Of a stretch of DNA of 64,000 bases, positions 7,956 to 45,187 are shown one piece after another. Every line of letters starts with the position of its first letter. The stretch's first letter is position 1. A model generated the notes under the pieces. It worked only from the letters and a program-made list of their open reading frames with translations. It was not told where the DNA came from and did not search any database. This DNA comes from Macrostomum hystrix (taxonomy: Eukaryota > Animalia > Platyhelminthes). Both the position numbers and the translations under genes were made by a program. Where the stretch lies: NCBI GenBank assembly GCA_950097015.1, contig CATNEN010000007.1:2852001-2916000 (forward strand), in the 5' to 3' direction.

Positions 7956-10052
7956 AAGGGTTGCAGTCCCATAGACACTGTCAGAATGGAAGGGTTGCAG
8001 TCCCGTAGACACTGTCAGAATGGAAGGGTTGCAGTCCCGTAGACACTGTCAGAATGGAAGGGTTGCAGTCCCGTAGACACTGTCAGAATGGAAGGGTTGC
8101 AGTCCCGTAGACACTGTCAGAATGGAAGGGTTGCAGTCCCATAGACACTGTCAGAATGGAAGGGTTGCTGTCCCATAGACACTGTCAGAATGGAAGGGTT
8201 GCTGTCCCATAGACACTGTCAGAATGGAATGGTTGCAGTCCCATAGACACTGTCAGAATGGAAGGGTTGCTGTCCCATAGACACTGTCAGAATGGAAGGG
8301 TTGCAGTCCCATAGACACTGTCAGAATGGAAGGGTTGCAGCCCCATAGACACTGTCAGAATGGAAGGGTTGCAGTCCCATAGACACTGTCAGAATGGAAG
8401 GGTTGCAGCCCCATAGACACTGTCAGAATGGAAGGGTTGCAGCCCCATAGACACTGTCAGAATGGAATGGTTGCAGTCCCATAGACACTGTCAGAATGGA
8501 AGGGTTGCTGTCCCATAGACACTGTCAGAATGGAAGGGTTGCAGTCCCATAGACACTGTCAGAATGGAAGGGTTGCTGTCCCATAGACACTGTCAGAATG
8601 GAAGGGTTGCTGTCCCATAGACACTGTCAGAATGGAAGGGTTGCAGTCCCATAGACACTGTCAGAATGGAAGGGTTGCAGTCCCATAGACACTGTCAGAA
8701 TGGAAGGGTTGCTGTCCCATAGACACTGTCAGAATGGAAGGGTTGCAGTCCCATAGACACTGTCAGAATGGAAGGGTTGCAGTCCCATAGACCCTGTCAG
8801 AATGGAAGGGTTGCTGTCCCATAGACACTGTCAGAATGGAAGGGTTGCAGTCCCATAGACACTGTCAGAATGGAAGGGTTGCAGTCCCATAGACACTGTC
8901 AGAATGGAAGGGTTGCTGTCCCATAGACACTGTCAGAATGGAAGGGTTGCAGTCCCATAGACACTGTCAGAATGGAAGGGTTGCTGTCCCATAGACACTG
9001 TCAGAATGGAAGGGTTGCTGTCCCATAGACACTGTCAGAATGGAAGGGTTGCAGTCCCATAGACACTGTCAGAATGGAAGGGTTGCAGTCCCATAGACAC
9101 TGTCAGAATGGAAGGGTTGCTGTCCCATAGACACTGTCAGAATGGAAGGGTTGCAGTCCCATAGACACTGTCAGAATGGAAGGGTTGCTGTCCCATAGAC
9201 ACTGTCAGAATGGAAGGGTTGCAGTCCCATAGACACTGTCAGAATGGAAGGGTTGCAGTCCCATAGACCCTGTCAGAATGGAAGGGTTGCTGTCCCATAG
9301 ACACTGTCAGAATGGAAGGGTTGCAGTCCCATAGACACTGTCAGAATGGAAGGGTTGCTGTCCCATAGACACTGTCAGAATGGAAGGGTTGCTGTCCCAT
9401 AGACACTGTCAGAATGGAAGGGTTGCAGTCCCATAGACACTGTCAGAATGGAAGGGTTGCAGTCCCATAGACACTGTCAGAATGGAAGGGTTGCTGTCCC
9501 ATAGACACTGTCAGAATGGAAGGGTTGCTGTCCCATAGACACTGTCAGAATGGAAGGGTTGCTGTCCCATAGACACTGTCAGAATGGAAGGGTTGCTGTC
9601 CCATAGACACTGTCAGAATGGAAGGGTTGCAGTCCCATAGACACTGTCAGAATGGAAGGGTTGCTGTCCCATAGACACTGTCAGAATGGAAGGGTTGCTG
9701 TCCCATAGACACTGTCAGAATGGAAGGGTTGCAGTCCCATAGACACTGTCAGAATGGAAGGGTTGCAGTCCCATAGACACTGTCAGAATGGAAGGGTTGC
9801 TGTCCCATAGACACTGTCAGAATGGAAGGGTTGCTGTCCCATAGACACTGTCAGAATGGAAGGGTTGCTGTCCCATAGACACTGTCAGAATGGAAGGGTT
9901 GCTGTCCCATAGACACTGTCAGAATGGAAGGGTTGCTGTCCCATAGACACTGTCAGAATGGAAGGGTTGCTGTCCCATAGACACTGTCAGAATGGAAGGG
10001 TTGCTGTCCCATAGACACTGTCAGAATGGAAGGGTTGCTGTCCCATAGACAC
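7956..10052. repeat. 34-bp minisatellite, ~61 units
   Basis: Unit AGAATGGAAGGGTTGC(A/T)GTCCCATAGACACTGTC; period 34 (7983 to 8017). Confidence 0.97.
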
Positions 10053-26071: not shown

Positions 26072-26794
<723 letters not shown>

Positions 26795-30982: not shown

Positions 30983-31550
<568 letters not shown>

Positions 31551-32344
31551 CGAGACCATCACTCTCCCAGTAATGTACGTTCCGTAAATTCGGGCTTAAT
31601 AATCACGGCTAGGTAATTTGCCCATAGAAAAAACTTGGATCCGTTCAAACAAAAATATTTTTTCTTCGTCTTAATATCTACACTTGTAGCTTCGTTGTTG
31701 AGAAGCCTCAAGGCGAATCTACTCATAGTAGCATGCAAGTAGCTCGTAAACTGTAGAATAGCCTTTGCAGTCAGGACTCAGAAAAATCGAATAAGATTTT
31801 AAAACATAGTCGGCTAGGGAAAAGGCGAGATAACACTAAGCAGTATCGAGTAAAGGACACGGGGAGTTGCTTGACTCCCTACTCTCTGAGTTGCACGGGG
31901 AGTCACGTGCCGAAATCCCAGCTCCCGCAGCCTTCCCAGCCTTGCTGGCTCGCTTCCCATTTTTAAGGCCTCTCTTCCTCTATCCCAGCAGAACCGAGCA
32001 GTCCCATTTTTCCTGATCAACATCAAGTCAGGCCTGTGCTATTATTTTTTTTTGTTAAAATCGGGAGCTGAGCATCTCGGTGGGGACCCGAGTCGGATGC
32101 TGATCCCAAACCGGCGGGCCGCGAATTTCCCCTTTCCCGATTTCAAGCGACCGGCTAGCAGGGCATCCTGTTAGTCAGACTATTTTTGTTCTCATCTCTC
32201 AGCCAGCCATGCTCAGGGCTGGACATGATTAGGAATCGTAATTAGTGAGTCTGAGTGATGAAGTGTTGAGGGTCAGCCTATGCTCCTTCCTCATCTGACC
32301 AACTGACTCAGCTTTCAATCATACTGCTTTTGGAAAGGCCCTCT

Positions 32345-32610
32345 TAACCTAACTCCTTCCTTCTCTCTCCTATCTTTCTAACCCTCATTCTTCTCTCTCC
32401 TATCTTTCTAACCCTCATTCTTCTCTCTCCAATCTTCTAACCCTCATTCTTCTCTCTCCTATCTTTCTAACCCTCATTCTTCTCTCTCCTATCTTTCTAA
32501 CCCTCATTCTTCTCTCGATCCTATCTTTCTAACCCTCATTCTTCTCTCTCCTATCTTTCTAACCCTCATTCTTCTCTCTCCTATCTTTCTAATCTTCCTT
32601 CTTCTCTCTC
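32345..32610. repeat. 30-bp pyrimidine-rich minisatellite
   Basis: Unit CTATCTTTCTAACCCTCATTCTTCTCTCTC, ~8 copies. Confidence 0.92.
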
Positions 32611-33252: not shown

Positions 33253-34270
33253 AGACTAGAGATGTGAAAGACTGCGACTAGACTAGAGATGTGAAAGACT
33301 GCGACTAGACTAGAGATGTGAAAGACTGCGACTAGACTAGAGATGTGAAAGACTGCGACTAGACTAGAGATGTGAAAGACTGCGACTAGACTAGAGATGT
33401 GAAAGACTGCGACTAGACTAGATGGAGAAAGACTGAGACTAGACTAGATGGAGAAAGACTGAGACTAGACTAGATGGAGAAAGACTGTGACTAAACTAGA
33501 TGGAGAAAGACTGCGACTAGACTAGATGGAGAAAGACTGAGACTAGACTAGATGGAGAAAGACTGCGACTAGACTAGAGATGTGAAAGACTGCGACTAGA
33601 CTAGATGGAGAAAGACTGCGACTAGACTAGAGATGTGAAAGACTGCGACTAGACTAGATGGAGAAAGACTGCGACTAGACTAGATGGAGAAAGACTGAGA
33701 CTAGACTAGATGGAGAAAGACTGCGACTAGACTAGATGGAGAAAGACTGAGATTAGACTAGATGGAGAAAGACTGCGACTAGACTAGAGATGTGAAAGAC
33801 TGCGACTAGACTAGATGGAGAAAGACTGCGACTAGACTAGATGGAGAAAGACTGAGACTAGACTAGATGGAGAAAGACTGAGACTAGACTAGATGGAGAA
33901 AGACTGAGACTAGACTAGATGGAGAAAGACTGCGACTAAACTAGATGGTGAAAGACTGCGACTAGACTAGATGGAGAAAGACTGCGACTAGACTAGATGG
34001 AGAAAGACTGAGACTAGACTAGATGGAGAAAGACTGCGACTAGACTAGATGGAGAAAGACTGAGACTAGACTAGATGGAGAAAGACTGCGACTAGACTAG
34101 AGATGTGAAAGACTGCGACTAGACTAGATGGAGAAAGACTGCGACTAGACTAGATGGAGAAAGACTGAGACTAGACTAGATGGTGAAAGACTGCGACTAG
34201 ACTAGATGGAGAAAGACTGCGACTAGACTAGATGGAGAAAGACTGCGACTAGACTAGATGGAGAAAGACA
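33253..34270. repeat. 26/27-bp minisatellite
   Basis: GACTAGACTAGATGGAGAAAGACTG(C/A) and GACTAGACTAGAGATGTGAAAGACTGC units. Confidence 0.95.
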
Positions 34271-34787: not shown

Positions 34788-35909
34788 ATGTCGGCCCCCT
34801 GCTCTCTGTTCATCCAGAGCCTCAAAGCTCCCCAGAAGCGGATTATGCCCAATCGATTTCTTCGATCGGCAGGGTTGCCAGAAGGTGCCGCTGCTCGTCT
34901 GCCGCAGCGATTATTCTCTAGAAACAACAACTCGTCTTCGACTGCCCATGGACCGCAGCAGCCATGGCAGGAGCGGCAGCAGCACTTAGTTGTCGGGAAC
35001 CTGCCCTACGTGCCGAGCTCGGTTCACTGCCCGATCGAGCTGAACCCTATCACAAATTCTCTAGGCGAGTTCGTGCCATTTGCCAACGCTCTGCGCAGCG
35101 TTCGCAGTCGCTGCCTGCCCACGGACATTGGCAACCGATTCGACGCAGATGACGAATTTGAATGGCTGGATCAGGCCAACAACAGTTCCTGTGAGTCTAG
35201 CTCGCGAAAGTTGGCCACCAAGGAGGCCGCCAAGCGAGAAAGCGACAGTTATTTCTTCTTGTATTTTCGCATCCGCATGGAGAACTATGTGGCACTGGTG
35301 ACGGCACTGAAGCAGAGCTGCAAGGATGAGAGCATCTTCAACGAGGAGAACTTGGACCGCTGGACGCACAAATACAAGTTCAAAATCCGTCGTTTGTCGC
35401 CGCTTAAGAAGGTAAGCCTTGCTCAGCACTTTTCAGCCTTTAGACTTGATGGCAATTTCAGCTGCGGAATATCCCAGTTACGATTCAACCTTAAATATAT
35501 TCGCTTTTTGCACAAGCTAATCATATTAAAAATATCTAACACATTTCGCCAGGTTCTGTTGGCCTTCTCCAGTCGAATGGGCGTCGAAGGCGACCCGGAT
35601 GTGATATACTGCATCGACGGCTTCTACGGGGATGCTTTCACCGGCCGGATGTATCACAGACTCGAGGTGCCAAACAACCGTGTCCTACCATCCAACACCT
35701 GCGTGTTAAGCGGGCTCAACAACGGCTCCAGCATCTTTGTCAGCCGGATCAATGACGCTGAGCGTCAGGACGCCGTCGCGCAGCTGCAGTTGGATCTGAT
35801 GCGTGGCAACGAGCTATCAGAAGATGAAGAAGGCGAGACGCAGGCGTCAGCTGCCACGAGAACAACAGGGGAACAAACTGACAACAAGAAAGTCGATACT
35901 CAAAACTAA
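34788..35909 (+). CDS. Nested antisense gene in TMEM184B intron 2; protein with a divergent SUMO-like (ubiquitin-fold) domain; probably 2 exons (34788-35411, 35553-35909; 326 aa)
   Basis: Long non-repetitive GC-rich ORF with first ATG at 34788. [23 protein letters not shown]...IYCIDG and [21 protein letters not shown] align by eye with the SUMO beta2-helix-beta3 and C-terminal strands once an AT-richer gtaagc...ttcgccag intron (35412-35552) is removed. Confidence 0.7.
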   Translation: [373 protein letters not shown]

Positions 35910-36944
35910 ACAGGCTGGAACCATGCAGCACTGACAATTTGTTGCATGCGCAGTTGTGATTGGTTGGTCAAAATGATTTCATTTCTATGTATTGGAGTTG
36001 CAATAGTAGCTGCTCTGACTGTCCTTGATCAATCTCATATTAGAAGATTGCTAGAACTGGTACCAGTTCTGCGATTTTCAAAGACCCTTGAGCTGCTTCT
36101 TGAGCAGCTCTTTTCTTTTTTGTCAGTCTTCATTTATTCAGAAATTAATTTTTAGAACATACGAGAGTTTTTCATTTTCGCATCCCGAGAACTCGTGTCA
36201 TTTTGTTTGAATTAAAATTACAGCTCTTCCAAAAGTCTTAAGCTTGCGAAACGTGCAAAGCTTGAACTTTATAAACAGAAACACAATTTTTGGTTGCTTT
36301 ATCTCTATAAAATGTATGAATAAAAGTCTCGCCATCCTTGTGTTTCTGAGCGAAAACAAATCTTTAAGCAATAGAGCTCCATCTCGGGGTAAACTGGTGT
36401 TGGAGAGCAGTCAGTTGCTCCTTTTAGGACTTGTCCTTGCACTTCGCTGGCGCAATTGCGGTTCTCAGAATTGAGTGCGCCTCTCCTAGAGTAGACTAGA
36501 GATGGAGAAAGACAGAGATTAGAGAAGAGATGGGAAAAGAGAGAGTAGAGGGTGCATGTGGAATGAGACAGATCAGCAAAAATCGACAAATCGCAAAGAG
36601 TTCATTCGCAGTTTAAGCTGGAGTATAAACAGCTGCCCTAAATTTAAATTGTCAGTTTCCGGGTTGTCCATTCTGCTCTTTCGGGGTCTCACATTTCTGC
36701 TTTTCGTTTGTCCCCATATTTCCTTGAATAAGGAGCTGCATTTGCCTTTACGCTATCTTTATACATCATTTGGTTTAGTTGAATGGTTTCATCATGATTC
36801 ACATTGATGCTGATGCTGGCACCGTGTTGTGAGTTTTTTAATACAATTTCATGCTTGATAGACTGTGGCATCTGATGATTGGGGTGTCTGTTTGTTAATT
36901 GGGGTCTCTTGTTATAGGTTGCTCTGACGGTACATTCTGGTGTC

Positions 36945-37618
36945 TGGTTGTCGATGGGGTGTCTGGTTGTAGATTGGGGTGTCTGGTAGTAGAATGAGGT
37001 GTCTGGTAGTAGACTGAGGGGTCTGGTAGTAGATTGGGGTGTCTGGTTGTAGACTGAGGTGTCTGGTAGTAGAATGAGGTGTCTGGTTGTAGATTGGGGT
37101 GTCTGGTAGTAGAATGAGGTGTCTGGTAGTAGACTGAGGTGTCTGGTAGTAGATTGGGGTGTCTGGTTGTAGACTGAGGTGTCTGGTAGTAGAATGAGGT
37201 GTCTGGTTGTAGATTGGGGTGTCTGGTAGTAGACTGAGGTGTCTGGTTGTAGATTGGGGTGTCTGGTTGTAGACTGAGGTGTCTGGTTGTAGACTGAGGT
37301 GTCTGGTAGTAGATTGGGGTGTCTGGTTGTAGACTGAGGTGTCTGGTTGTACACTGAGGTGTCTGGTTGTAGACTGAGGTGTCTGGTTGTAGACTGAGGT
37401 GTCTGGTTGTAGAGTGTCTGGTTGGGGTGTCTGGTTGTAGACTGAGGTGTCTGGCTGTAGATTGGGTGTCTGGTAGTAGATTGGGGTGTCTGGTAGTAGA
37501 TTGGGGTATCTGGTTGTAGACTGAGGTGTCTGGTTGTAGACTGAGGTGTCTGGTTGTAGACTGAGGTGTCTGGTTGTAGATTGGGGGTTTCTGGTAGTAG
37601 ATTGGGGTGGCTGGTTAA
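36945..37618. repeat. 20-bp minisatellite in TMEM184B intron 2
   Basis: Unit GTGTCTGGT(T/A)GTAGA(CTGAG/TTGGG); explains the ORFs at 36689-37697. Confidence 0.94.
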
Positions 37619-37683: not shown

Positions 37684-37941
<258 letters not shown>

Positions 37942-37965
37942 TTAATTTCTTTATCATTCACGCAC

Positions 37966-38109
37966 CTGGTAGGAGGTCATGATGACGGCAGTGATGGAGG
38001 AAATTCCGGCGATGCTCTGAGCCGCCGGTGTCTGCAAGAAGATCGGCGCTATCGGCGGACCTAGAGTAGTGTCGTCTGGCCCAATGGTGATGTTACTGTT
38101 GTTGGACAT
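37966..38109 (-). CDS. TMEM184B: TMEM184B-like, exon 1 (OST-alpha/Solute_trans_a family multipass membrane protein; 7 exons total 1218 nt = 405 aa + stop)
   Basis: ATG at 38109; MSNNSNITIG...PIFLQTPAAQSIAGISSITAVIMTSYQ|gtgcgt. The PIFLQT.AAQ.I.G motif is typical of TMEM184A/B. Confidence 0.88.
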
Positions 38110-38717
38110 TGCTGCCTGCTGTTTTGGGTAAAAGTTGTTTGTATTTTTAACAGATCTACAATACAAATGCATAAACACACAGTGAGATACACATGCTTCC
38201 AGTTACAATTAATTTTTTAAATAATATCAGCAAGCAGAAAACATAACAAAACACGTTAACTTATCCGAAATATATATTAGTATACTTTTTTAATTCAATT
38301 TACTTAAAGGATTCGACCAAAGATATACTTAAATTTAAACATAAAACTTTTTTAAAGTTAATAAATACTAATTATTACTACATTAATTAGAACATGAATA
38401 TAGCATACCTGTTTGAACTTTGATAGGGTTGTCCTTTTCTTTTTTTGTTTAGAGTTATTTTTAAAAAACTAGTGTAGCATTTTCGTTTATTTCTACAGTT
38501 GGCATTTTTTGTATAATAAATTAGAATCTACGCCATTTTATTATCATCTTTAAAATGCATCCAAGTTTATATTACATTACATCTCAGTACAAAACAAAAA
38601 TAATTACGGCAGTCCGTCCTTATAGTTTTGGGCTTGAATTTACTGAATTTTCTATAATGTTGTTTTAATGAAAAAATCCGGAATTGTTTTGATTGCGAAG
38701 TTTGTCATCTAAACGTT

Positions 38718-39130
38718 CTAATCTAAACTAATCGTCCGAGACAACGCCACTTTGTTTGAAAACTTTAGTATTTTATTGTAGTGCTCGACGCTTTCCGTTC
38801 GCTTATGTCCAGTCACAGCTTGAATCTTGAGAACGTCTTCAATCAGGTTTGTGACCACGCTTTTTTGGATGCAGTGGTTGGTGTGATTCCGGCCAGCAAG
38901 ACCAGCAAGTTCGCACAGCGTCTTCATGAAGCTGTTTAGCCAGTTCTTTCCTAGTACGAGATTATTGTGATACCAGTAGCCGTCAGTATTGTAACCGTGT
39001 TGGATTGGCTTTGGCCAGAGACATTCAACGCCCGTCGGTATCTTGCTCAGGTATAATTCAACTGCGCGCACTGGACACGTGGTAGGCTCATTTGGAGTCT
39101 CGACAAGAATGTATAATTCTTGAACGCTTA
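38718..39130 (-). mobile_element. Crypton-type tyrosine recombinase relic (C-terminal half only)
   Basis: CPVRAVELYL...WYHNNLVLGKNWLNSFMKTLCELAGL...TNHCIQK...TGHKRTESVEHY. The HxxR arginine is replaced by Q. Confidence 0.75.
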
Positions 39131-39209
39131 CGAGTGCGTCAATGGGAAAAGCACGAGTGCGCGAAGCGTGCGTTATATTTCTACGCACTGTCTAGTCTAA
39201 TCTGCTTTC

Positions 39210-40365
39210 GAGCCGGCTTGTTTCGGTATTTCAGGCGTACGAGGGCCATTAACATCATTGAAGGTGAAAAGTTTCATATTGCGAATTTAGCCTTGAAGGC
39301 CGTTAGTCGAATGTTCCTAAAAAATGGCGGTCGCATTCGGCATTACGAAGCGATGGAGAAGGACGATCTGAACAAACTGTGGACGTACTTCGACCGCTCA
39401 AATGGGACGAAGCTTCTACACGAGGTGTACTTCATTCTGCTCTATTACTTCGGTCAGCGAGGTCGTGAATGGCTCCGATCGCTCAATGTCAACAGTCTGG
39501 TGTTTGAGTTGTGGAGTGGAGTGGAGACTGTGCGACTTAATGGAGGACTCGAGAAAACCGTCGGCACAAGACTATCGCCGGGCGCAATGGAAGACAATCG
39601 AGAAGCCATTGTGAAGTCGACCGGCGGAGAGCACTGCCCTGTGGCTGCGATCAAGTTGTACTTGGAAAAGCGGGAGGCTAGCCTTTCGGCTGGGACTTCC
39701 TAGAGTAACATGCCTCTGTTTCTTATGCCTAGCATCGGCAAAAAGGCTGCTCACTGGTACACAACAAAGCCAATGGGCGTGAATGCGCTTCAGAATCTGA
39801 TGGCCCGGATTTCAGCGACTGCACAGTTGTCCAAAGTCTACACTGGGCACAACGTTCGTCCAACCGTCATTTCTGAGTTGCACGAAGCTGGCTTTCGTTT
39901 GGAGCAGATCTGCAAAATAACTGGCCATAAAGACGTGAAGACTGTTCAGCGGTAAGTGTCAGCATCGGGCTGCCAATAAAATTCTCCTGTTTGTAGTACA
40001 TTGTGTACTTAAAAGTAAAAAAACATTTTTGTACGTACTTTCGTTAAGCTACTTAACAAATGGCAAGCGCAAGGCGAGTGAACTGGGCAAGATGTCCGAC
40101 GTGTTGTCAGCATCGCTGTTCGTCTTCCGCGACCAACGATAAGTCTGTGGCTATCGTCGGACCATCTGGTGATATGGATTCGGCGGGGGATGCTACGTCT
40201 ATCTCCGAGGTCCCAAAGCGGGTGGCAAGTGTCGGAATGACGACGTCAATCCAAAATGTCAAGGTTGACGTTCAAGCATCTTCGGCCGATACTGTTCGAC
40301 CGGAGCTACATATTCATCTGAGTGGTAGTTTCAGCAATTGCAACTTCAAATTCGGTGATCAGTGA
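39210..40365 (+). mobile_element. Crypton-type tyrosine recombinase pseudogene with an intron
   Basis: YFGQRGRE (first catalytic R), HCPV, GHNVRPT (HxxR), TGHK, then intron 39952-40048 (gtaagt...ttaag) restoring TVQR-Y-LTNG...MSDVLS. In-frame TAG at 39701, a frameshift near 40120, and a terminal FSNCNFKF motif. Confidence 0.8.
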
Positions 40366-41276: not shown

Positions 41277-44200
41277 TCACTTGTAGCAGACTGGCTGCCA
41301 AGGACGAAGCCCGTACGGCTCCCGGATCTCCGGGTTCCGGTCCCGGTTGTCCCTTATTGCTGGAGACTCCAGGCCTGGAGGCAGGTCGACCTCATCCAGT
41401 TCCACCGGAGCAGCACCGGGTTCAGAAGCCTCTGATGGCTTCGGAGTCTCTGGTCGGCCGCTCCACTGGTTCGCGTGCGCCAGCCGCAAGCCACCGTCGG
41501 GCAGGTCAGCAGGAGCAACCAGCGCCGCTTTCAGGCCGTGCTGCACCACGAACTTGGCCGGAATCGGCGGGGTTCCGGGACGCATCCTCAGCCAGATTCG
41601 CCCGCCTGCTCAGTCATCGTTAGCGGGTGGCGAAGCCGACGGCCCCACATGAGGACGTCCGGGGACGCGGTCGTTGTATGCCTTGCAAATACGCTTCAGA
41701 ACATTGTATTTGCATGGCTCACATGATTCGCGTACACGACGAGGCGTCCGTGGATCGATACGGCCCAGGAATGGGAGGAAGAAGTTCGGCGAGCGTTCGC
41801 TGGGGAGCGTGTGCGTGTGGGACGAAGAAACGGCTGCCCCTGTGTTAGCAATCTCCCAGCGTTTCTCCCTCTCTCCCCATTCTGCCTCTGTTGTGCGCGC
41901 TGCTTGAATTTAAATACACTGGAAGCGAGAGGCAGAGCTTCGCTGCCGCTTTTCATGTGACTCCGGAGTCCACACAGAAACGGGCCTCTGGCCCGTGGAG
42001 CGTTTATCTCTCTGTTGCTGTGGCAGAAGGTAACAGGAAGACAAAACTTTCCTGTTATAATCGTCAACAGCAGCTTCTACAGGAAGTGGTCAAACGGCAC
42101 CACCTTCGTCCACGCCTTGAGCCCATCCTTGAGGATCCTCACCAGCCTTTCTGCCTGACCGTTGGAGGCGGGGTGATACGGCGGAGTGTGCAACTCCCGG
42201 CATCCAATGCTCTCCAGCCACCGAGAAACTTTCTCACTTTCAGCTGGCCAAACATCAATCTTCCTCGGCAGCACTGGACGCGCTTCTGAGCACTGCTGGC
42301 ACCGCTGCACAAAATCTCGGACATCTCGATCCAGGCCAGGCCACCAGAACTCCTTGGCAATGTGCGCCTTGGTTTTATCCGCGCTCGGGTGCACTTCATC
42401 ATGGGCAGCCTCTAGAATCCGCCTGCAGAGAATGGGTGGCGGCACAATTCTGGTTCCATGGATCACCAACCCGTCTTCCACTGGCAATGCTTGCCGGGAG
42501 GCCTTTCAACCTGCGACACCTGGCCCCATCTGCCTGATCTGATTCTCTGCTGCAGCCGTCTCAGCAACGAGCATGTCTTGGTCCCTTCTCGTAGCTCCTG
42601 AAGAGTCACCAGCGTCCCTTCCGAGATGAACTCTGACTCAAGCTGATGGACCGACTCATTCAGCAGGTCTTGGTTGACAAAGCTCAGGCGAGACAGCGCA
42701 TCAGCATCCACCATCAGCCTTCCAGGCACGTACTCCACCTCATAGTCAAAGGCCGATAGCCGCAGGGCCCAGCGCGTTAATCTTGCCGACACAGTTTTAG
42801 GCAGGTTTTTGCTCGGATTGAAGATGTACTTCAGAGGCTCATGGTCCGTCTGAAGCGTGAACCTCTTGCCCAGCAGCATCTTGCGAGCTCTTTCCACCGC
42901 CCACACAATGGCCAGCGCCTCTCTCTCAGTATTCGAATAGTTCGCTTCAGCTTTTGTCAAGGCCCGAGACAGGTACATGACAGGATGGCCGGACTGAACT
43001 AAGACAGCTCCTAACGACTGCTCGCTAGCATCGACTCCCAGGCACACTGGGGCGTTGACGTCAAACGGTTTCACGCAGGCACTCAGGCACTTCGAACTCA
43101 GGCACTCCTTCACTTGGGCGAAAGCTGCTTCAGCTGCCGGACTCCAGTCAAACACACGATCCAATTGGCGAAGTTCCTGCAGCGGCCGGCACTTCTCGGC
43201 AAAATTGGGGACCAGCCGACCATAGAACTGGGCCAGCCCTGGAAAGCGCTCCAGATCTTTCTTGTTCCTCGGAGCTTCAGCTTGCTGAATTCTCAGAAAC
43301 ATTCCGGGATCTGGTTTAATTCCGTCGACATCAATGATATGGCCCAGGAACTTAAGACTGCTAGCCTCCATGATGCACTTTGCCTCATTGATTTTCACAT
43401 TCGCCGCTCGCAGCTTGCCTAGCACCACTTCCCGGATGCTCTCCAGCTCTGCACGGGACACCGCTCCCACGAGGACGTCATCCTGGTACACAATGACGCT
43501 CGGGTGCTCACCCAGCAGCTTCTCCATCTCACGCTGAAACACCGAAGGAGAGACCTTAATGCCGTACGCAGGCGGTTGAATCGGTAGCAGCCGAACGGCG
43601 TGTTGATGGTGGTGATGTCCATGGACTCGTCCTCCGGCGGAATCTGATAGTAGGCGTCAGACAGGTCCAGTCGGCAGAACAGCTTCTTGTTGGCCTTCTT
43701 GGAGAATGCGGTCTCAATTGATGGGGTCAGGTACGTTTAATCCTGCACCCACTGATTGACAGCCGTGTAGTCTCCGCAGATCCGCACCGACGCCTTGTCC
43801 GACTTCACGGTCACCACGATCGGGCTGCCCCACTCAGACGACGCTACCTTCTTGACTATTCCCGCCTTCTCCATCAGGTCCAGCTCCTTCTTCACTAACG
43901 GCCGCAAAGCCAACGGCAGCTCGCGGGCTGTTTGAAAAATCGGCCGAGCTCCTGCCTTCAACCGGATCTCTCCTAGGGCTCCCTTGATGCCCAACAGACT
44001 CTCGTACCTGTTGTTGCTGGCTGGCCCCGCCTCGTTCGAATGGTGCGCTGTCGAGCAGGTCCCTGCCGAGCAGTCCGAACTTCTGCTGGCAGTCAATAAC
44101 AGGCAGCTCCGCCGCGGTGAAACAGCCGCCAGAGCCATCAGTCTCCAGAAGGCACTCCAGGATGCCGAGCTGCTTCATCACATGGCCGTCATAAGCCAGC

Positions 44201-45187
44201 ATCCGTGACTTCATTGACTTTAGTGGCGGCCTTCCAAGATCCTCCCGGATCCTTTTCGAGATGTCCTTCTCCATCTTCACCTGCTTGCTGTTGATTCGCA
44301 CCATGCAGAAGGCGGCCGGGCTGCCCTCGCCGCAGTAGAACACCGGATCGTCGCGGGTCACTACTGAGACGGCAACCCTTGGCTTCGGTCGGTGTGGCGA
44401 AGTGAGTCCTGGCGCTCCGACAGACCTTGGTGAAGTGGCCGTGTTTCCCGCACTGCTTGCAGGTGGCCTTCAGGGCCCAGCAGTCAGTAGGCCGGCGATG
44501 TGACATTCGGCCGCAGCGCTGGCAGCTTTGAGCCTCATTCGGCTGCCTCTGCTTCCACTTCTGAACTGCATTCACGCTATCCACTTCTAGCTCCTTTGAT
44601 GGCATCTCAGGTGTCAAGCTATCCATCTGGTGCACCGTGGAGTCCAGCGCAGCTGAGGCCCCTGACGAGAAAGTGCTCACCATCTGAAGCTGCTGAACAT
44701 AGTCGGTGATCTGGTCGACTGATAACGCAGCCGTGACCTCGCGCTCGAGAACCTTGCTCCTGACCTCCTGATTGTTGAGGCCGGCGATGAGTCGCATCTT
44801 GACCAGCTGCTCTGCTGGGTCAACGTCCTTGTCCTTCAGCTTTTCAAACTCGCACGCCACCGCCTGTTCTCGAAGACGGCTATGGTCTCGCCCTCGCCCT
44901 GGCGCAGGGACATCAAGGCCGCTCTCTCTGCGATCAGCAGCCTCTTCTGCGGTTCCAGAAACTTTACGAGACTCGACTTGATGTCGTTCCACTTCATCTT
45001 TGAAAGCTGACTAGGTGCAACCAGCTGCTTCACCTTGAGGCAGCCCAGGAAAGCGTCAGTCAGTGCCAGGTTGCCATCGGTGTCCTGAATTCCTTTTGAT
45101 CGCGCCTGTGCGTCAAAAACTTCAACCCATGCTCGCAGCTCATCTATGTTGCCGAGAGGCAATTGGGTCCCGCAGCTTGATTGACAT
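41277..45187 (-). pseudogene. gag-pol of the Gypsy element, disrupted
   Basis: ATG at 45187. Domains are split over ORFs 44836-45162, 44189-44992, 43834-44361, 43737-44138, 43419-43622, 42463-43542, 42077-42487 and 41277-41585, with stops at 43737 and 42077 and several frameshifts. Confidence 0.9.

Follow-up and report, generated by a model that had tools for sequence, protein, structure and literature searches.

The described systems closest to the protein analysed here are SUMO itself and the RENi family (Rad60, Esc2 and NIP45). SUMO proper (Smt3, SUMO1 and SUMO2/3; PF11976, ubiquitin clan) has a beta-grasp core of the order beta-beta-alpha-beta-beta-(3-10)-beta, in which beta1 and beta2 are joined by a tight hairpin, and the beta2-alpha1 segment forms the SIM-binding groove. 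In Rad60, Esc2 and NIP45, SUMO-like domains that cannot be conjugated guide the SUMO E2 enzyme in genome maintenance. Members of the RENi family carry two such domains (SLDs) in tandem at the C-terminus, and are characterized by Ubc9 binding and by Smc5/6-linked genome maintenance. The SLD2 of Esc2, Rad60 and NIP45 binds via the Ubc9-backside contact surface, for which D68 is the decisive residue in Smt3; SLD2 can be substituted by a SUMO that is not conjugatable, but not by one with the D68R change (PMC7849368).

The stretch of 64,000 nucleotides from Macrostomum hystrix analysed here, hereafter called the window, contains on its plus strand a two-exon gene whose product is best described as a member of a SUMO-derived, insertion-bearing, single-domain protein family private to Macrostomum. 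The gene and the parts of its predicted product are listed below, with H and E numbers counted along the structural model of the orthologous domain.

34788..35411, plus strand: exon 1 of the nested gene, from the ATG start to the splice donor, 208 codons (from the translation; the ends match the Macrostomum lignano orthologue P0001)
35412..35552, plus strand: intron of the nested gene, 141 nt, gtaagc...cag, phase 0
35553..35909, plus strand: exon 2 of the nested gene, 118 codons plus TAA (from the translation and the alignment)
35250..35750, plus strand: predicted SUMO-like beta-grasp domain, split by the intron (window residues about 155-274, equal to P0001 143-262)
35277..35363, plus strand: insertion 1, a stretch of about 29 residues which separates beta1 from beta2 and contains two short helices (H51-61 and H70-73 in the model, between E39-47 and E77-85)
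35622..35681, plus strand: insertion 2, directly after the invariant Asp-Gly, 20 residues with family-invariant Phe, Gly and Pro (pLDDT >90)
35754..35801, plus strand: predicted C-terminal helix in place of the flexible ..QTGG tail of SUMO (model helix H160-175), followed by an acidic tail and the stop

Exon 1 codes for an N-terminal extension of about 150 amino acids with conserved short motifs, followed by beta1, insertion 1, beta2 and alpha1 up to its middle. Exon 2 completes alpha1 and adds beta3, the invariant Asp-Gly, insertion 2 and beta4/beta5, ending with the C-terminal helix and an acidic tail that has no Gly-Gly. From the ATG at 34788 to the TAA stop codon at 35907-35909, the predicted product is about 326 amino acids long (208 + 118 codons). 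The 141-nt intron is by chance stop-free in frame, so that a mechanical list of open reading frames gives a single long ORF, hereafter the read-through ORF. The peptides quoted in an earlier note on this DNA were found in the exon translations where that note had placed them.

When the read-through ORF was compared with 5.8 billion proteins in a word search, a single match was obtained, P0001, a 317-amino acid 'hypothetical protein' of M. lignano. BLASTP aligned the read-through ORF with P0001 from end to end, with one gap of 47 residues which corresponds exactly to the proposed intron. Three exons make up the gene of the M. lignano orthologue (locus L001, 10001-11890). The second of its introns lies at the same codon boundary as the intron in the window, after PLKK, and the first, with a tetranucleotide microsatellite in it, is without counterpart in the window. 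In a codon comparison made exon by exon, 191 of the 302 codons aligned between the window gene and P0001 were identical (63 %), with dN 0.27, dS 1.2 and dN/dS about 0.22; the dN/dS for exon 1 was in the range 0.12-0.27, and the central piece had a dN/dS of 0.12 and 82 % identity. Since the gap coincides with the intron, the intron position is shared and dN/dS is 0.22, the ORF is a conserved gene under purifying selection, and at the level of sequence the comparison confirmed it as a real coding gene rather than a chance ORF. Conservation of the ORF in a relative, which had been set beforehand as a test, is thus provided by the M. lignano orthologue.

The ORF in M. hystrix could also be a decaying or non-expressed copy, only the M. 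lignano copy being functional, and the window's own protein was indeed absent from the protein collections searched. However, the window gene has kept its start and stop codons, its splice sites and its reading frame intact, and non-synonymous divergence is about one fifth of the synonymous, with the smallest value in the domain core, which makes a decayed copy very improbable.

Pfam searches with the window exons and the read-through ORF gave nothing at threshold; a match to DUF1707 was noise only and was rejected as an identity. No match at threshold, to PF11976 or to any other Pfam model, was obtained with the whole P0001 sequence or with the 14 family members that were scanned whole. The only Pfam match of the P0001 domain was to Rad60-SLD (PF11976), with E 0.19 over 28 residues (profile 11-38), scoring 12 bits where the cut-off is 23.8. 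The profile comparison with Rad60-SLD proposed in the earlier note therefore gave the match looked for, but below threshold.

All 45 sub-threshold matches of P0001 in a phmmer search of the PDB were SUMO or SUMO fusions. The ESM-feature clusters nearest to P0001 were those of Rad60-SLD (score 0.83), taken as a lead only. A profile made from the family domain matched Drosophila SUMO with E 0.012 and tandem (di-)SUMO2 with E 3.8e-5, the per-domain sequence E-values being only 0.01-0.9, and the best 60 of its 83 matches were nearly all SUMO or SUMO fusions. The pattern which the flatworm domain has in common with SUMO proper consists of FKI[KR]..PL..L..A[FY]..R.G......F..DG, covering beta2-alpha1-beta3 with the DG after beta3, and of I..N.T..L..GD.I.V at the beta4/beta5 end; the HMMER alignments to SUMO break at the DG and resume at the second of these motifs. 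In sequence, beta2-alpha1 is the segment of the domain most similar to SUMO. The residues D218-G219, R204 and G206, which are nearly invariant in the family, align with the DG and R..G positions of SUMO, and the Asp-Gly pair corresponds by alignment to Asp68-Gly69 of Smt3. Literature searches on Macrostomum together with SUMO, and on the M. lignano locus tag, returned nothing relevant.

The structure of the domain was predicted with AlphaFold2 for the M. lignano orthologue, using an alignment of 13 family rows in which the two exon pieces of the window were included as separate rows, and the domain coordinates in the window were carried over via the gap-free core of the alignment between the window and P0001. 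A model of full-length P0001 from a 3-row alignment was unusable (pLDDT 37) and was replaced by the domain model. The model of P0001:105-285 had a pLDDT of 83.4 and a pTM of 0.77, with the core above 90. In P0001 numbering, beta1 was predicted at 143-151 (FF.YFRIR), as the strand proposed in the earlier note, two short helices at 155-165 and 174-177 between beta1 and beta2, beta2 at 181-189, alpha1 at 195-204 and beta3 at 213-216, followed by a long ordered loop; beta5 was predicted at 256-261 and a further helix at 264-279.

In Foldseek comparison of the model with the PDB, the best 50 or so matches were nearly all SUMO, with target-normalised TM values of 0.7-0.86. A scan of 48,161 chains, independent of Foldseek, placed SUMO at ranks 1-11 (Z 8.6-10.2, 19-23 % identity), with ubiquitin and other UBLs at Z <= 8.4 and 5-10 % identity, the NFATC2IP UBL (2jxx) at Z 8.2 and 17 % identity, and Rad60 SLD2 (3rcz) at Z 7.7 and 10 % identity. 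VIA-align of the model with SUMO2 gave Z 10.2 and an rmsd of 1.4 A, with 73 of 73 SUMO2 residues aligned at 22 % identity over model residues 39-158; the whole beta-grasp core of SUMO proper thus superposes on the flatworm model. The structural neighbours of the model in the ESM Atlas were the ubiquitin/Rad60-SLD clusters. The insertions were not covered by any solved structure, and no more than about 80 of the domain's 120 residues could be aligned. A predicted beta-grasp, the other outcome set beforehand as a test, was therefore obtained with high confidence by AlphaFold and Foldseek, with the best matches all SUMO, and the modelling supports assignment of the domain to the SUMO-type beta-grasp.

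Upstream of the domain, the claimed N-terminal extension of about 150 amino acids was borne out by the alignment and the model. Residues 1-130 had no Pfam match and a low-confidence prediction without a beta-grasp (3-row model), in agreement with the claim that only one domain is recognisable, and the N-terminal residues, about 150 in number, are probably disordered, with conserved short motifs. The domain is preceded by a conserved acidic F.W motif, which was predicted in the P0001 model as a short strand with moderate confidence and could serve as an in-cis pseudo-SIM.

Relative to SUMO, insertion 1 adds about 25-29 amino acids and is present in all family members. An insert after beta1 (FFLYFRIR) had been proposed earlier and does exist, although at this length and not at the approximately 35 amino acids claimed. 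Insertion 2 adds about 18-20 amino acids in the alignments and the model, close to the approximately 19 claimed for the insert after the DG, and contains the nearly invariant columns F220, G222 and P236. Together, the two insertions amount to about 45 residues beyond SUMO.

The acidic tail encoded by exon 2 of the window gene contains no GG, as had been claimed, and a GG within 23 residues after beta5 was found in none of the 19 family members. Only P0003 has GG pairs, located 24-30 residues after beta5 in a Gly/Glu-rich tail. In the P0001 model, the predicted helix begins where SUMO has its ..QTGG. These GG pairs of P0003 are what speaks for the protein being a true modifier which is conjugated after unusual C-terminal processing. 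Against this, no member has a GG at the position of that in SUMO, a helix is predicted after beta5, the tails are not conserved and an N-terminal extension of 150 amino acids is atypical of modifiers. A true modifier is thus hardly credible, and an identity as conjugatable SUMO was rejected on the missing GG at SUMO's position.

An exhaustive HMMER (phmmer) search with P0001 of 1.84 billion representatives found 13 proteins at E <= 0.001. Nine of these were from M. lignano and one from a 1-kb Logan contig, and the other three look, from their sequences, like chimeric models of the paralogue P0002. With no more than 56-59 % identity between its product and the nearest M. lignano paralogues, the Logan contig stems from a different species. 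P0025 was the only further member obtained in a word search with the domain alignment (A3); the word search with the full-length family alignment was dominated by low-complexity words and gave at least three proteins. Counting P0025, the family comprises about ten paralogue groups; a second family copy was found neither in the 64-kb window nor in the M. lignano locus. The paralogue P0013 carries the automatic UniProt name 'Rad60-SLD domain-containing protein'. Judged by these searches, the protein encoded in the window is one of a multigene family rather than a single oddity, and the exhaustive search is consistent with the earlier suggestion of lineage specificity, the family having been seen so far only in Macrostomum. 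The core, including both insertions, is common to all family members, and its nearly invariant positions are W180, T181, R204, G206, D218, G219, F220, G222 and P236.

Compared with SUMO proper, the flatworm protein lacks the Gly-Gly and has a predicted helix after beta5 instead of a flexible tail. It further differs in its two conserved insertions, its 150-amino acid N-terminal extension and its sub-threshold Pfam score, and in being restricted to Macrostomum with many paralogues. With the RENi SLDs (NIP45 SLD2, 3a4r; NFATC2IP UBL, 2jxx; Rad60 SLD2, 3rcz) it shares the arrangement of a C-terminal SUMO-shaped, presumably non-conjugatable domain in a longer protein, and the acidic residue matching Smt3 D68 in RENi SLD2 is also retained in the flatworm family. 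The RENi proteins, however, have two tandem SLDs whereas the flatworm protein has one domain, their SLDs are without the insertions carried by the flatworm domain, and the N-terminal parts have no recognisable relationship. RENi SLD2 is also further from the flatworm domain (Z 7.7-8.2, 10-17 % identity) than SUMO2 is (Z 10.2, 22 %). As the protein has a single domain, and one which resembles SUMO more than it does SLD2, membership in the RENi family was rejected. Of the earlier proposal of a SUMO domain in the manner of Rad60/Esc2/NIP45 without GG, the SUMO-like fold and the lack of GG were retained, but the likeness is closer to bona fide SUMO than to the RENi SLDs.

On balance, we consider it probable that the window contains a functional two-exon gene with a SUMO-derived domain, the product of which is a non-conjugatable, non-covalent SUMO look-alike belonging to a Macrostomum family of about ten groups. 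According to the mechanism proposed, the protein would not be conjugated and would act non-covalently as a look-alike of SUMO. Binding to Ubc9 and/or SIM-containing partners would tune or redirect sumoylation, and the insertions together with the variable N-terminal parts would determine the specificity of each paralogue. Because beta2-alpha1 and the Asp-Gly are held in common with SUMO and are nearly invariant among the paralogues, a non-covalent SUMO mimic engaging Ubc9 and/or SIM-bearing partners is favoured, tentatively, with a likelihood somewhat short of even. Insertion 2 lies beside the Asp which would make the Ubc9 contact, and it could obstruct this surface instead of maintaining it.

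Alternatively, the domain may be a generic interaction or scaffolding module without a role in the SUMO pathway, the likeness of its surface to that of SUMO being a historical residue. UBL domains are widely reused and many UBLs gave Z 7-8 against the model, both conserved insertions change the hairpin and the loop beside the Asp-Gly, and no SUMO counterpart is named for the family-invariant W180, T181, F220, G222 and P236, all of which would fit such a module. The most SUMO-like stretch of the domain is nevertheless the SIM-groove segment together with the DG, which is among the best conserved in the family, and this would be unexpected if these surfaces were unused. A generic module is thus considered rather unlikely, though a serious competitor to the SUMO mimic. 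A more elaborate form of the SUMO mimic, which we regard as improbable, is that a duplicated SUMO gene gave rise to a private Macrostomum family of non-conjugatable decoys, in which insertion 2 and the acidic F.W strand would make the proteins switchable regulators of the E2/SIM-reader type.

If the SUMO mimic is real, such mimics would have arisen independently a second time, suggesting that the SUMO fold is readily recruited as a regulator. The Macrostomum set would be closer to SUMO itself, would carry conserved insertions next to the residue of the E2 contact, and would have expanded within a single flatworm lineage to about ten paralogue groups. Macrostomum is a genetically tractable model for stem-cell-driven regeneration, and if the switchable decoys were also real they would constitute a lineage-specific layer of sumoylation control in a regenerating animal. 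The SUMO mimic, if real, would also make the members of the family candidate lineage-specific SUMO-pathway proteins. So far annotated as 'hypothetical protein' and missed by Pfam, the family is now provided with a predicted fold, an alignment of its members and the boundaries of its domain.

The gene is flanked on both sides by minus-strand exons of a host gene, a membrane-transporter gene of the TMEM184/OSTalpha family, Pfam PF03619 (Solute_trans_a), as follows.

37963..38112, minus strand: probable first coding exon of the host, ATG then MSNNSN... (tblastx 80 % identical to L001 8330-8479)
37684..37941, minus strand: stop-free segment with the upstream flanking host exon, conserved exon about 37717-37932 (PF03619 E 5e-19, 69 bits, profile 14-71)
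30983..31177, minus strand: stop-free segment with the downstream flanking host exon in its 3' part (PF03619 E 4.6e-6, 26.6 bits, profile 71-101)
26072..26764, minus strand: last large coding exon of the host (PF03619 E 1e-37, 130 bits, profile 158-267)

The three exons matching PF03619 (130, 69 and 26.6 bits) are all above its gathering cut-off of 24.9 bits, and Pfam gave no match of its own for 37963-38112. As the profile positions 14-71 are continued by 71-101, the two flanking exons are adjacent and the nested gene lies inside the intron between them. The sequence thus confirmed a complete plus-strand gene antisense within one intron, of approximately 6.5 kb, of a PF03619 (TMEM184/OSTalpha-type) gene, and the nested antisense placement claimed earlier was upheld by the PF03619 exons on either side.

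In M. lignano, host exons are found on the minus strand at L001 8076-8291, to which the host exon at 37684-37941 is 82 % identical, and at 8330-8479, both on the 5' side of the orthologue. The orthologue itself starts about 1.5 kb from the probable first host coding exon and is outside this intron. Conserved nesting in relatives, also raised by the earlier note, was hence observed for the neighbourhood and the relative orientation, but not for the position within this intron. The arrangement is the same as that of other genes nested antisense in introns of larger hosts, with a position that is not fixed between Macrostomum species. The host intron of approximately 6.5 kb in the window also carries four minisatellite arrays. 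In M. lignano, the gene model P0012 has a Hydantoinase_A (oxoprolinase) part fused to a segment of the P0002 paralogue.

In both M. hystrix and M. lignano, the SUMO-like gene adjoins coding exons 1 and 2 of the TMEM184-like gene on the same relative strands, with the order swapped. The features compared between the window and L001, the M. lignano locus, were the following, in addition to the nested gene itself.

Window 37717-38112, minus strand: first two TMEM184-like coding exons, M. hystrix
L001 8076-8479, minus strand: first two TMEM184-like coding exons, M. lignano
L001 10001-11890, plus strand: SUMO-like gene, M. lignano

In the window, the SUMO-like gene is located 3' of these exons (in the host sense), within an intron, whereas in M. 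lignano it is located on their 5' side in head-to-head orientation, at a distance of about 1.5 kb. The swapped order points to either a small local transposition or a misassembly in one of the two genomes. The M. lignano orthologue contains an extra intron after ..EWLDQ (L001 10352-10576), which is packed with a (CAGA)n-type microsatellite. No intron is present at the matching position of the window gene, and one of the two lineages has thus gained or lost an intron.

Four minisatellite arrays were found within the host intron, the third and fourth of which flank the nested gene.

31157-31569: 24 bp, 18 copies
32360-32610: 30 bp, 8 copies
33266-34269: 26 bp, 38 copies
36939-37616: 20 bp, 33 copies

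Similar arrays are also found at 20.2-21.8 kb and 24.3-25.9 kb of the window, and account for the long spurious ORFs there.

An LTR-type retrotransposon fragment is located immediately 5' of the host gene, its domains spread across several frames, and further ORFs were noted nearby.

42080-43542, minus strand: LTR-type retrotransposon fragment (RVT_1, RT_RNaseH and Integrase_H2C2 domains)
43737-45162, minus strand: ORFs upstream of the fragment, resembling a zinc-knuckle gag
38721-39700, both strands: a pair of ORFs that overlap on opposite strands

The minus-strand ORF of the overlapping pair matched DUF3504 below threshold (20.4 bits, cut-off 29.7). This ORF may be what is left of a tyrosine-recombinase-type element.

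The N-terminal part of the window protein is variable apart from short motifs at residues about 70-130 (34995-35177, plus strand), which are kept across several paralogues.

LPYVPSS..CP.EL.P
VPFA..L..VR.RCLPT
acidic F.W.D, then NNS..ESSSRK

These motifs had neither a Pfam match nor a confident structure. Several public M. lignano models of one paralogue (P0002, P0006, P0008 and P0012) are chimeras or fragments. P0012 fuses a Hydantoinase_A (oxoprolinase) part with segments of the SUMO-like family, suggesting that the OPLAH locus houses this paralogue in M. lignano.
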